From Octopus sinensis (lineage: Eukaryota), in assembly GCF_006345805.1 (NCBI RefSeq), contig NW_021835813.1, positions 1-38,098 on the forward strand: a DNA stretch of 38,098 bases, in the 5' to 3' direction. How positions within the stretch are numbered: the stretch's first letter is position 1; the number at the start of each line of letters is the position of its first letter. The notes below the pieces were generated by a model. The model was not told the DNA's origin. It did not search any database and saw only the letters and a list, made by a program, of their open reading frames with translations. The position numbers were made by a program, and so were the translations under genes. Of this stretch, positions 5,439-34,731 are shown in pieces.

Positions 5439-5588
5439 TGGGTTCTCTTTAAGAAGATGATCCAACATTTCACACGATGCATCTTCATGTTTCCATTTAT
5501 TATCTGCACTTCGATTTCAATTAATAAAACCTTCAAAGACATGCGAAAACGGCGCAAGTCCTAAACGGCGCATGTCCTAAAACGGCGG
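5439..5588 (-). pseudogene. SAMHD1-like fragment P1
   Basis: Encodes ..[29 protein letters not shown]; homologous to ~31765-31890; carries the 16-17 bp minisatellite. Confidence 0.8.
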
Positions 5589-6307
5589 CACCTTGAAAAA
5601 TTTGTTATCGACTATTTCGACCCCAATACTTTTTTTTAAAATCCTTTTAAGCTTGGTACTTACTCTATCGGGCTTATATGCCCAACCGCTAAGTTACTTG
5701 TTTTAGTCATTTGACTGCGACCATGCTGGTGCACCGTCGTAAAAATTTTTTAGTCGAATTTATTTACTCCTGTGTCTATTTTTAATGCCTGGTACTTATC
5801 CTATCGATCTCTTTGCCGAGCTTTTAATTTACGGGGATGTAACAAACGGGTACCGGTTGTCACACACACACACAGACACACACATTATTTTATTTGTTTC
5901 AGTCATTTGACTGCAGCCATGCAGGAGCACCGTCTTTAGTTGAACAAATTGACTCCAGGATTTTTTTTTTGTAGGCCTAGTACTTATATCGGTTTAAGTT
6001 TCGGGGATGTAACTTAGACCGATATAAATTACCGAGTTACGGGGACGTGAACACACCAGTGTCGCTTGTGAAGCGATGGTTGGGGAACAAACAGAGATAT
6101 ACAAACACATAATACTTCTAATATATATATATATATATATATATATAATATATATATATATATATATATAATATATATATATATATATATATATATATAT
6201 ATATATATATATACGAGTATTCTTTTTAAAAAAAACTTTTCTTTTAATTTTTCTAAATTTAATTATTTAATTGTTACAGTTGAAAAAGTCTCAATGACTG
6301 AAACCGG

Positions 6308-6437
6308 TACAGAAATATTTTTTATAAAATTATTTTAGCATTTTCTATCTTGACTTTTTTTCCATATATATATATATATATGGAAAAAAATTCAAGATAG
6401 AAAATGCTAACATAATTTTATTAAAAATATTTCAGTA
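6308..6437. repeat. About 130-bp palindrome centred on (TA)n; second copy 25314-25449
   Basis: Arms TATTTTAGCATTTTCTATCTTGA / TCAAGATAGAAAATGCTAA.ATA. Confidence 0.85.
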
Positions 6438-6530
6438 TATATTTATATATATATAAAGATAAGATCATTATTTAAATATCGATCTTATCAGGTGGTCAGC
6501 ATAGGAATAAGAACCTTCAAAGGTAATAAT

Positions 6531-31007: not shown

Positions 31008-32207
31008 CTATATCCTTTCAAAACAATATCTGACATTCAGTTGAAATGTGCCTGGCAGAAACAGCATCTCTTCTAGTTCATCTGGATTATAATTGAATGA
31101 TTCATGCATATTTCCTCTTTCATAAAATGGGATTTTCACTAGTGGGTTTTCATTTCCAGCTCCATAATCGAAATTAGCTTCACAGACTATATTGCCCGGT
31201 TCTTCGCCTTGGTCATTTCCATCCTCGACTGTGCCTATGTACCTATAAGATCGTTTGATTATATCATTCAATGTATTCCGAGCCACTCTGAGGTTTTCAT
31301 TATCCTCATTCCTTAATATCTCCTCCAAAATACTATCTGTAAAATAAGTAAATCTCCTCATATCGTAGACATTTTCGATAATTCCCAGGTGTCTCTCTGC
31401 GGATCTTAAGGTCTCGCAAAGTAGCGTATTAAACAGAAGAACAGTTTTGTGTTGGTAAGCTGTTTTATGTAATCGATATCGGGAATAAAACATATCAAAG
31501 AAATTATCAACAGTTTTGTCTCTGTAGCATATTTGATCACCTATGACTCTGGACATTTTTATCATTCTTTCGTGATCAAATGACTTTCCAATACCAAGAA
31601 AATGGGAATCTCTCGCCAGATAATCCCATTTATCAACGTCGATGTTATAGTCTCTATTGTTGACAATTTGGTAAAGAAATTGTGGTCTCGCGGAATTTTC
31701 TGATTCACCAATGATAAGATCTTTTATGAAAGCAATTTCATCAGGCTCAAGTTCTTCTCTAACATGTGGGTTCTCTTCAAAAAGATGATCCAACATTTTA
31801 CATGATGCATCTTCATGTTTCCATCTATTATCTGGTCTTCGATTTTCATTAATAAAACCTTCAAAGACATGCGAAAACGGCGCATGTCCTAAATCATGAC
31901 ACAAACCAGCAATTTCCACGCAAAGTATATCTCGATCAGATATCTCCAGATCGGGATTTTGCTGTTTTAGACGACGAACCAATTTCCCAGCTAAGTAACA
32001 TGTCCCCAGACAATGCTCGAATCTATTATGCGAAGCTGATGGAAAAACATAATAACACAAACCTAATTGTTTGATGTTCCGTAATCTCTGAAATTGTACT
32101 GTATTAATAATTTTAACACAGAGAGGCGGCAACTCCATAGATCCGTGAATAGCGTCATGAAAAACCTGATCCGAATCCATACGGCTTGAATTTTCAGATT
32201 GAGTCAT
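31008..32207 (-). CDS. SAMHD1-like: Intronless SAMHD1-like HD-domain dNTP triphosphohydrolase, gene A (399 aa from first ATG; frame open to TTG at 32348)
   Basis: FHDAIHG, QFQRLRNIKQLG, HNRFEH, GLCHDLGHAPFSH, WKHE, DVDKWDYLARD, R..LH..AYQHK, TDSI, DYG..NP align colinearly with the human SAMHD1 HD domain. All four metal ligands (H167, H206, D207, D311, human numbering) are present. No SAM domain. Confidence 0.92.
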   Translation of the reverse strand: MTQSENSSRMDSDQVFHDAIHGSMELPPLCVKIINTVQFQRLRNIKQLGLCYYVFPSASHNRFEHCLGTCYLAGKLVRRLKQQNPDLEISDRDILCVEIAGLCHDLGHAPFSHVFEGFINENRRPDNRWKHEDASCKMLDHLFEENPHVREELEPDEIAFIKDLIIGESENSARPQFLYQIVNNRDYNIDVDKWDYLARDSHFLGIGKSFDHERMIKMSRVIGDQICYRDKTVDNFFDMFYSRYRLHKTAYQHKTVLLFNTLLCETLRSAERHLGIIENVYDMRRFTYFTDSILEEILRNEDNENLRVARNTLNDIIKRSYRYIGTVEDGNDQGEEPGNIVCEANFDYGAGNENPLVKIPFYERGNMHESFNYNPDELEEMLFLPGTFQLNVRYCFERI

Positions 32208-33507
32208 TATTAAATTATTAGGAAAACAGCTAAATTTTTGGTGGGGCTTTCGTTTATGTTGCTGTTGTTGTTGGTTTTGTTGGTGGTGGTCTCGTTGTTG
32301 CTGCGTGTGTTGGTTTTGAAATGTGGAGCAGAAATATAAGTTATCCAATTATGTTTAGTTGGCTATTTCTAATATTTGATTTGAAGAGATCTCAGTTGTA
32401 TTGGCATTTAGATATGTGATGTCAGAAATAATATCAGCGATCCCGAAATTGGTTCTGTGTTTGGTGGCAACAAAACAAAATAAACAGTGTTGTTATATCA
32501 GAAGTCAGCTGACAACCGAACCCGATTGTCACAGCTGTTATCTCATTCGATACACAACTTTTACTTTGTTTTATAAGCATAAACAACTTCAACATCAACA
32601 ACACCACCACCGCAGCAGCAGCAGCAGCGGCACTAATAGCAGCAGGAGCAGCAATAGGAAAAGCAACAGCGTCAGTAGTTGGTGGTGGTGGTGGTGGTGG
32701 TGGTTTTGGTGGTTGTGGTGGTGGTGGTTGTGGTAGTAGTGGTACTTGTAGTAGTAGTAGTAGTAGTAGTAGTAGTAGTAGTAGTAGTAGTAACAGTGGC
32801 GGCTGCTGCTTCTAAATTTCACTTTCACTATTAATCTACTCTACTGCGAATTAAATCCGTCATCTTAACCGGTATTGTGTGTTGTGTTGTGTGTGTGTGT
32901 GTGTGTGTGTGTGTGTGTGTGTGTGTTGTGTTGTGTGTGTGTGTGTGTGTGTTAGCGTGCGTTCACCGTGTGAGAGGAAGAGTGTCTGTTTTGTGTATTC
33001 GTGTGCTTAGCTATCTATATGAGTTTGTGAGTGTGTGCAGGTGGGTGTACGCCAACCAAATTTCAAACAAACATTCTCCACTCCTTGTATTTGTCACTAC
33101 AGTTATACAATCAAACGATATATTTTCAAAGTAAGAAAACATGCTAAAATTTAAAGAAATCGAAGACGTTTGGTTAAAGGAAAACATTTCCTGTAAAAGA
33201 AAGACAAAACATTAAAATTATCTTTTATCATTTATTAGCTTCTACTACAGAGCTGCGGCCACGCTGAAGCACCAAAAACTATTGTTCGTTTAGTATTTCT
33301 AACTTTTGAAATTTTTCAGTAGTTAAGTATATTTTTATGATTTTTAACTTTCACCAATTTTCACTTCAATTCTCATACTGTTTCATTAGTTTATTTTCTT
33401 TGATTAGTAATTTTCCATATGATTATTTTGTTGTTGCTTTTTCTCTAGATTCTTGTTTTTCAGTTTGCTTTTTTTTTATATCCAGTAATTATTATTTATT
33501 ATTTTAA

Positions 33508-34731
33508 TCATCTTCTCCTTCTTCTTTGGCTCTTCCTTTTCCTTTGAAAACAATATTTGATTTTCATTTGAAATTTGCGTGGCAGTGACAGCATCTCTTC
33601 TAGTTCATCTGAATTATATCTCAATAATTCATGCGTACTTTTTTTATAAAATGGGATTTTCACTAGTGGGTTTTTCTTTCCAGCTCCATAATCGAACTTA
33701 GCTTTACAGACTATATTGCCCGGTTCTTCGCCTTGGTCATTTCTATCATCGACTGTGCCTTTGTACTTATAAGATCGATAGATTATATCCTTCAATTTAT
33801 TCTGGGCCTCTTTGAGGTTTCCATTATCCTCATTCTTTAATAATTCCTCCAAAATACTATCTGTAAAATAAGTAAATTTCTTCATATCGTCGACCTTTTC
33901 GAAAATTTTCACGTGTTCATTTGCGGATTTGAAGGCCTCGCCAAGTAGTTTATTAAACAGAAGAACAGTTTTGTGTTTGTAAGCTGTTTTATGTAATCGA
34001 TATCGGGAATAAAACATATCAAAGAAATTATCAACAGTTTTGTCTCTGTAGCATATTTGATCACCTATTACTTTGGACATTTTTATCATTCTTTCGTGAT
34101 CAAATGACTTTCCAATACCAAGAAAATGGGAATCTCTCGCCAGATAATCCCATTTATCAACGTCGATGTTATAGGATTTATTGTTGATGATTTGGTAAAG
34201 AAATTTTGGTCTCCTATAGATTTCTGGTTTACCAGTAATGAGATCTTTTATGAAATCAATATCATTACGCTCAACTTTAATACGTGGGTTCTCTTTAAAA
34301 AGATGCTCTAACATTTTACATGATGCATCTTCATGTTCCCACTCTTCACCTCCATTTTCCTTGCGATACTCGTTGATAAAACCTTCAAAGACATGAGAAA
34401 AAGGCGCATGTCCTAAATCATGACACAAACCAGCAATTTCAACACAAAGTATATCTCGATCAGATATTTCCAGATCGGGATTTTGCTGTTTAAGATGGCG
34501 AACCATTTTCCCAGCTAAGTAACATGTCCCCAGACAATGCTCGAATCTATTATGCGAAGCTGATGGAAAAACATAATAACACAAACCTAATTGTTTGATG
34601 TTCCGTAATCTCTGAAATTGTATCGTATTGATAATCTCTACACAGAGAGGCGGCAACTCCATAGATCCGTGAATAGCGTCATGAAAAACCTGATCCGAAT
34701 CCATACGGCTTGAATTTTCAGATTGAGTCAT
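33508..34731 (-). CDS. SAMHD1-like: Intronless SAMHD1-like HD-domain dNTP triphosphohydrolase, gene B (407 aa from first ATG; frame open to TTG at 34872)
   Basis: Same motifs as gene A with intact metal ligands; AYKHK variant; basic tail RKRKSQRRRRR. Tandem unit spacing to gene A is about 2.5 kb. Confidence 0.92.
   Translation of the reverse strand: MTQSENSSRMDSDQVFHDAIHGSMELPPLCVEIINTIQFQRLRNIKQLGLCYYVFPSASHNRFEHCLGTCYLAGKMVRHLKQQNPDLEISDRDILCVEIAGLCHDLGHAPFSHVFEGFINEYRKENGGEEWEHEDASCKMLEHLFKENPRIKVERNDIDFIKDLITGKPEIYRRPKFLYQIINNKSYNIDVDKWDYLARDSHFLGIGKSFDHERMIKMSKVIGDQICYRDKTVDNFFDMFYSRYRLHKTAYKHKTVLLFNKLLGEAFKSANEHVKIFEKVDDMKKFTYFTDSILEELLKNEDNGNLKEAQNKLKDIIYRSYKYKGTVDDRNDQGEEPGNIVCKAKFDYGAGKKNPLVKIPFYKKSTHELLRYNSDELEEMLSLPRKFQMKIKYCFQRKRKSQRRRRR

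Follow-up and report, generated by a model that had tools for sequence, protein, structure and literature searches.

A tandem cluster of intact and broken SAMHD1-like genes in Octopus sinensis, probably one sector of a larger octopod-specific array

SAMHD1 is an enzyme that deprives viruses of the building blocks they need for DNA. A contig of Octopus sinensis carries a run of related genes, some intact and some broken, which raises the question of how such a cluster came about and whether it could serve defence. The window, meaning the whole 38,098-nucleotide stretch that was analysed (NW_021835813.1, positions 1 to 38,098), is best explained as one sector of a larger, octopod-specific tandem array of SAMHD1-derived genes, and we put the probability of this explanation as a whole at about 0.7.

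A tblastn search of the window with the two intact open reading frames (ORFs) recovered these genes and six relics, far above chance, all on the minus strand and within 29.3 kb. This agrees with a sequence-only reading of the same DNA, which had counted two intact genes and at least six relics on one strand within 30 kb. The members are:

31008-32207, minus strand: G1, intact single-exon SAMHD1-like gene, ATG to stop, 399 aa (ORF 31008-32348)
33508-34731, minus strand: G2, intact single-exon SAMHD1-like gene, ATG to stop, 407 aa (ORF 33508-34872)
5433-5651, minus strand: relic P1, short P5-type piece of about 45-70 codons (tblastn, E 5e-19)
14959-16225, minus strand: relic P2, 5'-truncated gene copy with a coding remnant at 15283-16224, 298 of about 400 codons (tblastn, E 3e-152, about 75% identity)
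18271-18601, minus strand: relic P3, about 92 codons from the HD-motif region, truncated at both ends (tblastn)
20175-20730, minus strand: relic P4, composite debris (tblastn matches 20175-20243 and 20461-20730)
22324-22621, minus strand: relic P5, P3-type fragment with one frame break (tblastn)
23637-23898, minus strand: relic P6, copy of P5 with one frame break (tblastn)

G1 and G2 differ at 10% of their DNA, and their proteins are about 80% identical (20% differing); upstream of G2 the frame stays open to 34872 through microsatellite-derived sequence that holds no ATG. The remnant of P2, whose DNA is 87% identical to the G1 and G2 units (self-blastn), has one in-frame stop and one in-frame 42-bp tandem duplication and is free of frameshifts. 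Relics P3 to P6 match with tblastn E values of 1e-26 to 1e-35, and P3 contains one small tandem duplication that breaks the frame. P4 is assembled from a copy of the P2 5' end (about 76 codons), an intergenic piece and a 23-codon piece that is identical in protein to G1 and lies out of order; its sources are visible by self-blastn (15950-16318 versus 20456-20824, 96.7%; 20245-20461 versus 32703-32929, 90.4%). The segment [11 protein letters not shown], which the sequence-only reading had placed in P3, P5 and P6 and in neither intact gene, occurs exactly three times, on the minus strand at 18494-18526 (P3), 22514-22546 (P5) and 23791-23823 (P6), and is indeed absent from G1 and G2.

Both intact genes encode a complete SAMHD1 catalytic core. 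Their ORFs match solved human SAMHD1 (E 3e-86) and the Pfam HD family (E 7e-12 for G2, 9e-11 for G1), and the AlphaFold model of G2 (pLDDT 88.6, pTM 0.89) aligns by Foldseek with the human core at TM 0.87-0.88. Neither ORF has a SAM domain, and DNA coding for one was absent from the window and from the 10 kb on either side of each octopod locus. The description of an intronless, SAM-less, SAMHD1-like cluster holds. In G1 and G2 the four metal-binding residues are all present, as are most of the other active-site positions examined (H167, H206, D207, D311, R164, H210, H215, H233, K312, Y315, D319, R366 and Y374; roles from PMC7045340 and PMC7311409). With the core whole and these residues in place, the products are predicted to be dNTP triphosphohydrolases. 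At the first allosteric site, the position of human D137 is N in all 11 aligned family proteins, while Q142, R145, R451 and the majority of second-site residues are retained. In human SAMHD1, the change of D137 to N makes XTP the activator in place of GTP (PMC7045340; PMC7311409), and the allosteric regulation of the octopus enzymes is probably rewired.

The octopus proteins are like vertebrate SAMHD1 (human, mouse and pig structures, e.g. 6tx0, 4bzc and 6txc) throughout the fold of the catalytic core (TM 0.87-0.88, 40-42% identity), and they share with it the HD metal motif and most other checked active-site residues. The octopus genes differ in that they lack the SAM domain, have a single coding exon where the vertebrate gene has many, and occur as many tandem copies where vertebrates have one gene. 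Further changes lie in the first allosteric site (K116 is Q, N119 is H) and at the dimer-dimer interface (H364 is Y, R372 is T), and the linker ahead of the C-terminal lobe is shorter. Molluscan SAM+HD SAMHD1 proteins (Haliotis asinina P0058, Mercenaria, Mytilus, chiton) share about 42-45% HD-core identity and the same catalytic residues with the octopus family, but possess the SAM domain and D at 137 (checked in Haliotis); the Haliotis gene is split into at least 13 coding exons spread across 20 kb. SAM-less "SAMHD1-like" paralogues of fishes, corals, bivalves and crustaceans likewise consist of the HD core, sometimes with several per chromosome (Pfam annotation), but group apart from the octopod clade, except that one crayfish gene is weakly linked to it (69%).

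Single-exon genes include G1, G2, P0012 (a full 412-aa ORF), P0016, P0006, P0008, P0015 and Argonauta P0014 and P0038. In a tree built by neighbour-joining only, the octopod family received 100% bootstrap, and a SAM-less clade that includes the Argonauta hians protein P0038 and P0048, a relative of it from Logan transcripts, received 98%. P0038 resembles the window family in having one coding exon, no SAM domain and N in place of D137. It is less diverged (45-49% identical to SAMHD1 of other animals) and stands alone between SMAD and BEACH-domain genes, outside any array, whereas the window family is a long-branched, amplified offshoot. The single-exon, SAM-less state is not particular to the amplified family; its presence in P0038 and in P0122 shows that it is old and common to the window family and Argonauta. 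Since the window family, P0038 and P0122 fall within one clade, introns and SAM domain would have been lost once, long ago, in an ancestor that preceded the Octopus-Argonauta split. This loss probably happened all at once, when a 5'-truncated mRNA was retroposed. Neither a poly(A) remnant nor a target-site duplication was found in support, nor was a SAM-containing parent gene seen in octopods, and the introns may instead have been lost gradually.

The later history of the family can be followed in the repeats of the window:

32709-35263, minus strand: tandem duplication unit with G2, its upstream microsatellites and downstream flank (self-blastn)
30126-32743, minus strand: tandem duplication unit with G1 (self-blastn)
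5582-12030, no strand: block A, part of a segmental duplication spanning about 19 kb (self-blastn)
24667-30693, no strand: block B, partner of block A, directly downstream of G1 (self-blastn)
12031-14958, no strand: 2.9-kb insertion separating the P2 unit from block A (12026 and 14959 both align to 30693 of the G1 unit)
16226-16401, no strand: trinucleotide microsatellite directly next to the 5' end at which P2 is truncated (TRF)

The two gene units, each about 2.6 kb, are 89.7% identical over 2642 columns. The 19-kb duplication sets P2, block A and P1 parallel to G1, block B and P6; four pieces of block A (5582-6145, 6189-7635, 7970-8888 and 8933-12026) match 24667-30693 at 95-98%, and P1 travelled with this duplication (5230-5587 versus 22119-22478, 98.3%; all self-blastn). 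P6 was made from P5 by a 1.27-kb tandem duplication (22359-23635 versus 23636-24892, 94%), and the 2.9-kb insertion contains direct repeats of 266 bp (13207-13472 and 14692-14957). Arrays like the one abutting P2 stand at the 5' ends of P3 (18611-19072), P4 (20735-20824) and P5 (22631-22861; TRF), similar trinucleotide repeats occur upstream of G1, and in P3, P5 and P6 the junction joins the G1 upstream flank to coding sequence.

These arrangements show that, in the Octopus lineage, the gene multiplied at the DNA level by unequal crossing-over or segmental duplication, giving in the window the G2-G1 tandem pair with its 90% identical units, the 19-kb duplication and smaller sub-duplications. 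Copies died by deletions anchored in the upstream microsatellites, which took away the 5' part of the gene, and the debris was then recopied. Relics P1 to P6 represent two main fragment lineages later multiplied by segmental duplication, not six independent deaths. Intact and dead members coexist, as in the birth-and-death picture first drawn for the cluster, and the six relics go back to a few gene deaths.

The cluster also extends well beyond the 30 kb first assigned to it. In O. vulgaris it covers at least 0.5 Mb of one chromosome, with family genes at 24.96, 25.06, 25.19-25.20 and 25.46-25.48 Mb. A further paralogue with the 11-residue segment had been predicted, and O. vulgaris has it intact about 100 kb away (L003, ORF 9779-11017, 412 aa). 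In an independent O. sinensis assembly the order G2, G1, block and relic is repeated at 96.8% identity over 10.6 kb, and block B is colinear with the O. sinensis locus L002. The counterparts there carry frame-breaking 1-bp indels (one in G2, three in G1), which may reflect genuine decay or mistakes in the assembly. In O. vulgaris the protein corresponding to G2 ends differently at its C terminus (457 aa), and the reference genome of that species shows another arrangement of the region, so one assembly may be wrong or the locus polymorphic. No description of such a cluster was found in the searchable literature.

Codon comparisons point to opposite pressures along the protein. Between G1 and G2, dN/dS is 0.11 in codons 1-100 (p=0.0002), 0.4 in the catalytic N-terminal half and 3.1-3.8 by four methods in codons 201-396, where 55.5 non-synonymous stand against 4.5 synonymous differences (Fisher p=0.006). 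Family-wide values are 0.16-0.34 for the N-terminal and 0.7-1.15 for the C-terminal half. By these measures, the N-terminal catalytic half is under purifying selection, with a significant excess of amino-acid changes in the C-terminal half between G1 and G2.

Other readings of the locus have to be weighed against these data. That a large DNA virus was the source of the single-exon genes, or that each copy is a separate fresh retrocopy, is very improbable. Giant-virus HD phosphohydrolases (Pandoravirus, Hokovirus, Megaviridae; BFVD models) do share the overall fold (TM 0.81-0.86), but their identity of 22-31%, against 40-46% for animal SAMHD1, and the nesting of the family within animal SAMHD1 sequences in one clade with SAM-less P0038 argue that they are not its closest relatives or source, and that the origin is animal, not viral, which had been suggested as one option. 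Nor are the copies new retrocopies: tandem units of about 2.6 kb and 19 kb include flanking DNA, and because upstream and downstream flanks are common to the copies, these multiplied as DNA. An assembly artefact, in which two haplotypes are set side by side, is somewhat less far-fetched but still improbable. The near-identity of the two 19-kb blocks, the differing O. vulgaris arrangement and the richness in microsatellites would fit it, yet the divergence of G1 and G2 is excessive for alleles, the gene order recurs in the independent O. sinensis assembly, and other sectors of the O. vulgaris cluster likewise contain tandem copies.

We consider it unlikely that the sector is merely decaying, with G1 and G2 as recent unconstrained copies heading the way of their six neighbours. 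The overall G1/G2 dN/dS of 0.8-1.0, the frame-breaking indels in both O. sinensis counterparts and the altered end of the 457-aa O. vulgaris protein would agree with decay, as would dN/dS of 1.2-2.9 in comparisons with the corresponding copies of O. sinensis and O. vulgaris, none significant, which also fits relaxed constraint. Neutral decay does not, however, produce the split between purified and changing halves: codons 1-100 are strongly constrained, the C-terminal half lies significantly above 1 instead of at 1, and both frames are complete in the window with metal-binding and most checked active-site residues kept. A little more credible, though still doubtful, is a role in ordinary nucleotide metabolism, with copies kept for dosage or tissue-specific control of dNTP pools and no part in defence. 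The core role of SAMHD1 is dNTP homeostasis (PMC7045340), the N-terminal half is under purifying selection, and detection in mucus could reflect shed cell contents. Against this, dN/dS of 3-4 over half a protein is rare in housekeeping enzymes, copies are gained and lost rapidly, catalytically dead paralogues are conserved, and the basic role could fall to a less diverged paralogue such as that seen in Argonauta (P0038).

The preferred reading, a SAMHD1-derived array, is plausibly that of a putative nucleotide-depleting, diversifying defence family, because the C-terminal dN/dS pattern, the copy turnover and the family proteins in skin mucus fit such a role, which the kept catalytic residues also back. 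The family looks like a fast-changing, immune-type expansion confined to octopods. Mammalian restriction-factor clusters such as APOBEC3 and TRIM5 evolve in a similar mode: tandem copies are gained and lost, pseudogene debris is present, copy number varies from one close species to the next, and dN/dS exceeds 1 over part of the protein. Their proteins and mechanisms are unrelated to those of the octopus family. The exact G1 and G2 proteins are absent from a collection of 15 billion proteins. In O. vulgaris skin mucus several SAMHD1-like proteins have been detected, one of them with 16 peptides, of which one fits the long paralogue type.

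Both intact genes of the window, G1 and G2, encode proteins that match the Pfam HD family (PF01966, E values of 7e-12 and 9e-11) and, in phmmer searches, the solved human SAMHD1 (E 3e-86). With the two proteins as tblastn queries, six relics (P1 to P6) were recovered, and all matches lie on the minus strand. The sequence-only reading had likewise counted two intact genes and at least six relics on one strand and had ended the cluster at 34731, which is the start of G2. The features are as follows:

31008-32348, minus strand, open frame of G1; from the first ATG 31008-32207, 399 aa
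33508-34872, minus strand, open frame of G2; from the first ATG 33508-34731, 407 aa
5433-5651, minus strand, relic P1, a short piece
15283-16224, minus strand, relic P2, with a 5' truncation, one in-frame stop and one in-frame 42-bp duplication, without frameshift
18271-18601, minus strand, relic P3, truncated at both ends, with one frame-breaking small tandem duplication
20175-20243 and 20461-20730, minus strand, relic P4, a rearranged composite
22324-22621, minus strand, relic P5, truncated at both ends, with one frame-breaking small tandem duplication
23637-23898, minus strand, relic P6, truncated at both ends, with one frame-breaking small tandem duplication

The human enzyme SAMHD1, much studied for its antiviral and dNTP-control roles, is generally regarded as the product of one spliced gene and as having a SAM and an HD domain; here its catalytic core occurs as a large single-exon, SAM-less tandem family. 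The genes are already annotated as "SAMHD1-like" in public genomes, often as truncated models, and many aquatic animals have annotated SAMHD1-like paralogues that lack SAM, so that the news lies in the organisation and evolution of the family and not in a new protein. Literature searches found no earlier description of the cluster, nor one of the octopod SAMHD1-like family.

Self-comparison of the window, which is A+T-rich animal DNA with abundant microsatellites and transposon remnants, resolves three layers of duplication. G1 and G2 each occupy a unit of about 2.6 kb, the two units being arranged head to tail (30126-32743 and 32709-35263, 89.7% identical); the units take in the upstream microsatellites and the downstream flank. 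A second, larger unit of about 19 kb exists in two copies, such that G1, the block 30693-24667 and P6 parallel P2, the block 12030-5582 and P1, the second copy being interrupted by a 2.9-kb insertion (12031-14958). Repeated sub-units make up the stretch from 16.2 to 24.9 kb, and a 1.27-kb tandem duplication among them made P6 from P5. Since the flanks were duplicated together with the genes, independent retrocopies are ruled out as the source of these copies.

The relics fall into two main lineages, namely P2/P4, with a common 5' end adjoining a trinucleotide microsatellite, and P1/P3/P5/P6, which are copies of one fragment. At the 5' junction of this fragment, sequence from upstream of G1 (about 32655-32679) is fused to coding sequence about 105 codons into the open reading frame; the fragment is a deletion derivative of a single-exon gene. 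Taken together, the relic lineages and the counts of their breaks show that the six relics reflect a few gene deaths, after which the debris was copied. Relic ends near Haliotis exon borders prompted a reading of the relics as leftover exons of a spliced ancestor. This is ruled out by the 5' junction of P3, P5 and P6, where the G1 upstream flank is joined straight to coding sequence, and by their internal "frameshift", which is a 33-bp tandem duplication and not an intron. The 33-bp unit (18384-18465 and the matching spots in P5 and P6) is tandemly repeated at the site of the HD motif, the CHDLGH stretch of the intact genes, part of which it replaces.

An 11-residue segment, [11 protein letters not shown], is encoded exactly three times in the window, in P3, P5 and P6 and in neither intact gene, just as had been noticed from the sequence; the 33-bp repeat is common to all three of these relics and so arose before they were copied. 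The further paralogue that the segment had been taken to imply exists: the O. vulgaris gene at 24.96 Mb (9779-11017 of locus L003) carries it in an intact 412-aa open reading frame from an ATG, annotated as a truncated protein of 338 aa.

The SAMHD1-like cluster extends beyond the window, and the top protein matches of G1 and G2 are Octopus proteins. The window is colinear with O. sinensis CM016869.1 near 10.68 Mb (96.8% identical over 10.6 kb), a stretch that takes in G2, G1, the downstream block and the first relics. With O. vulgaris OX597824.1 near 25.06 Mb, the best-matching segments are 94-98% identical and the arrangement differs. One further O. vulgaris family gene is on another chromosome; the others share a single chromosome, as follows:

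24.96 Mb, family gene
25.06 Mb, family gene
25.19-25.20 Mb, three complete copies plus one fragment
25.46-25.48 Mb, three copies of the long type, which has an insertion before the C-terminal lobe

Several traits of birth-and-death evolution are thus present: G1 and G2 are 90% identical and P2 is 87% identical to them, six relics accompany them, other sectors of the cluster hold three copies each, Octopus and Argonauta members form lineage-specific clades, and the arrangement is not the same in the window, in the O. vulgaris reference and in O. sinensis. Between G2 and its O. vulgaris copy (33508-34731 against 9860-11203 of locus L001) there are 0 DNA differences in codons 1-200 and 50 in the last 207. 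The identity over the first 200 codons points to O. vulgaris or a very close relative as the origin of the window, and the 3' half of G2 is mosaic in structure, for which a recent event of gene conversion or of recombination among paralogues is the simplest explanation. The O. sinensis counterparts (6900-8400 and 9400-10900 of locus L002) carry frame-breaking 1-bp indels relative to the window, one in G2 and three in G1, which may be real or may be long-read assembly errors; the locus is repeat-rich and the three assemblies disagree, which makes assembly accuracy a main uncertainty. Many O. vulgaris models, among them the proteins P0007, P0009, P0011-P0013, P0015 and P0017, begin with an internal methionine (MIRHL or MVRHL) that lies deep in the catalytic domain, and public annotations therefore under-describe the family.

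A single uninterrupted coding exon is found in G1, in G2 and in all eight of the other octopod genes checked. The Argonauta gene P0038, which is less diverged and more typically SAMHD1-like, has this structure, and so does a related gene, P0122. Haliotis SAMHD1 has a SAM domain and at least 13 exons over 20 kb, whereas the octopod genes have one exon and no SAM domain. Pfam gave no SAM match in G1 or G2, whose proteins begin about 10 residues before the HD core, and neither the window nor the DNA up to 10 kb from each octopod locus examined codes for SAM; among the best 120 matches of two protein searches, there was no SAM-containing or spliced octopod SAMHD1. In a neighbour-joining tree (399 columns, 100 bootstraps, in place of a full likelihood model), the octopod family has 100% bootstrap support and joins P0038, P0048 and two further sequences in a SAM-less clade (98%) nested among animal SAMHD1. 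Octopus and Argonauta members occupy separate sub-clades, which indicates that the amplification was for the most part lineage-specific. A comparison of repeats found none in common between octopus DNA and the clade members P0048, P0049, P0027 and P0122. P0038 itself (10001-11341 of the Argonauta hians locus L004) sits between a SMAD gene and a BEACH/WD40 gene; among the matches listed, it has no named Octopus orthologue and its only close relative is the Logan transcript P0048 (64% identical).

The simplest reading of this pattern is a single old loss of introns and SAM domain, probably when a 5'-truncated transcript was retroposed, after which the single-exon copy was amplified through tandem DNA duplication. 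The suggestion that the amplified intronless family is a retrocopy would then hold for the ancient loss and fail for the amplification itself, which proceeded by DNA duplication; nor is the single-exon, SAM-less state special to the amplified copies, being ancient and present in P0038 as well. A poly(A) remnant or target-site duplication was sought downstream of five genes, where nothing convincing was found and the sequence is A+T-rich with short A-runs only and has no common tail or flanking repeat. The missing hallmarks of a retrocopy are to be expected if the event is old; with these hallmarks no longer visible, the introns may instead have been lost stepwise. Recruitment of a virus-derived HD gene had been offered as another origin. 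Giant-virus HD proteins have their fold in common with the octopod family, but identity to them is 22-31% compared with 40-46% to animal SAMHD1, and the family nests inside animal SAMHD1 in the tree, so that a viral origin is rejected.

G2 was modelled with AlphaFold on the basis of a 29-sequence alignment (mean pLDDT 88.6, pTM 0.89), and the model superposes in Foldseek on the human SAMHD1 catalytic core over the whole query (TM 0.87-0.88, 40-42% identity) and also on fungal SAMHD1. As modelled, the catalytic core of G2 is complete, including the C-terminal lobe. Residue roles were taken from published work on the human enzyme, whose numbering is used here (PMC7045340; PMC7311409). G1 and G2 keep the metal motif H167, H206, D207 and D311 as well as R164, H210, H215, H233, K312, Y315, D319, R366 and Y374, and from this active site both are predicted to be dNTP triphosphohydrolases.

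The allosteric sites are kept to differing degrees. In the first, Q142, R145 and R451 are kept and D137 is replaced by N in 11 of the 11 family proteins aligned, while G1 and G2 also have Q at K116 and H at N119; the GTP-specific set of this site (D137, Q142, R145, R451) is therefore not intact in the octopod family. Human SAMHD1 with D137N accepts XTP in place of GTP as activator, with similar catalysis (PMC7311409), and by analogy the octopod enzymes probably respond to a different activator. The second site is mostly kept (R333, R352, K354, N358, H376, K377 and D330). Of the residues at this site or the tetramer interface, K523 is K in G2 and R in G1, and F337 is M. At the dimer-dimer interface, as judged from sequence, D361 is kept, H364 is Y and R372 is T. 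The natural difference thus falls at the very position where the human substitution alters activator specificity, and the octopod variants are relevant to the question of how allostery and tetramer formation in SAMHD1 can vary.

Pairwise tests of dN/dS, used here in place of site models, separate the two halves of the protein:

Pairwise dN/dS estimates for family genes
G1 against G2, codons 1-100: 0.11 (p=0.0002)
G1 against G2, codons 101-200: 0.48
G1 against G2, codons 201-396: 3.1-3.8 by four methods (55.5 non-synonymous against 4.5 synonymous differences, Fisher p=0.006)
G1 or G2 against the counterpart copies in O. sinensis and O. vulgaris, over 262-407 codons aligned: 1.2-2.9, without significance
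Pairs of more distantly related paralogues, N-terminal half: 0.16-0.34
Pairs of more distantly related paralogues, C-terminal half: 0.7-1.15

In pairs other than G1/G2, the C-terminal half is near 1. On these estimates the catalytic half is conserved, and the C-terminal half is diversifying or, at least, weakly constrained. Synonymous divergence is lower in the C-terminal (0.18-0.33) than in the N-terminal half (0.30-0.80) in every pair of distinct types, and amino-acid divergence in the C-terminal half of the same pairs is as high as in the N-terminal half, or higher. The low synonymous divergence may reflect gene conversion of the 3' half combined with diversifying selection.

To our knowledge, next to nothing is known of cephalopod antiviral immunity, for which the octopod family provides concrete candidate genes. 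A role in defence is a reasonable suggestion, drawn from the evolutionary pattern. We tentatively propose, at a probability of about 0.3, that one ancient intron-less SAMHD1 copy gave rise to a diversifying octopod arsenal against cephalopod viruses or retroelements yet to be found, which would comprise active dNTPases with a rewired first allosteric site (N at D137, probably not switched on by GTP) and a positively selected C-terminal half, and a conserved subfamily of catalytically dead paralogues that may serve as regulators or decoys. Such an arsenal would be an invertebrate counterpart of mammalian restriction-factor clusters. Further features of the family are a C-terminal half that seems to evolve faster than neutral and one subfamily that is conserved despite its lost catalytic residues.

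This subfamily comprises P0002 (O. sinensis), P0003 (O. bimaculoides) and P0006 (O. vulgaris), in which D207 is N, H215 is Y and H233 is N, with D311 also N in P0003; it is kept in the three species despite these losses. In O. vulgaris, two tandem 413-aa copies (9923-11131 and 15413-16621 of locus L010) have dN/dS of 0.16 and 0.37 in their two halves. Judged by its residues, the subfamily looks like a conserved non-catalytic relative of SAMHD1. The long type, in which about 150 residues of repetitive sequence are inserted ahead of the C-terminal lobe, is represented by P0005, P0008, P0015 and P0017 and by the loci L012 (three copies) and L011.

Several SAMHD1-like proteins are reported in a published O. 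vulgaris skin-mucus proteome, where they vary with captivity and senescence; the detection is at family level, and nothing in it is specific to G1 or G2. One mucus protein of 534 aa, with 16 peptides, fits the long type, as does its peptide at residues 79-89. An exact look-up for transcripts in a large protein collection returned neither the exact G1 nor the exact G2 protein. As context, SAMHD1 is one of the antiviral-pathway genes that an oyster study lists as differentially expressed in a disease-resistant family.

The odd C-terminal end of the O. vulgaris model P0001 is encoded at 33151-33200 (minus), about 300 bp downstream of the G2 stop and directly after a splice-acceptor-like sequence, and may represent an alternative spliced form without the C-terminal lobe or a wrong model. 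Pfam scans of the other open reading frames of the window gave as sole match a DDE_1 transposase remnant (7834-8286, plus strand, E 2e-16) inside the duplicated block, the DNA around it being duplicated at about 26.7-27.6 kb; two near-identical 107-aa open reading frames lie at 9319-9642 and 27960-28283. The insertion 12031-14958 contains 266-bp direct repeats (13207-13472 and 14692-14957, 92.6% identical) and a 161-aa open reading frame (13573-14058, minus) with no Pfam match, and is probably a mobile-element remnant. Positions 1-5000 are very A+T-rich (23-30% G+C), with several asparagine-rich open reading frames that have no family matches and with internal repeats of about 400 bp (3565-4661), and positions 1-371 are copied at 17690-18059 and 21650-22019 (95-98% identical).
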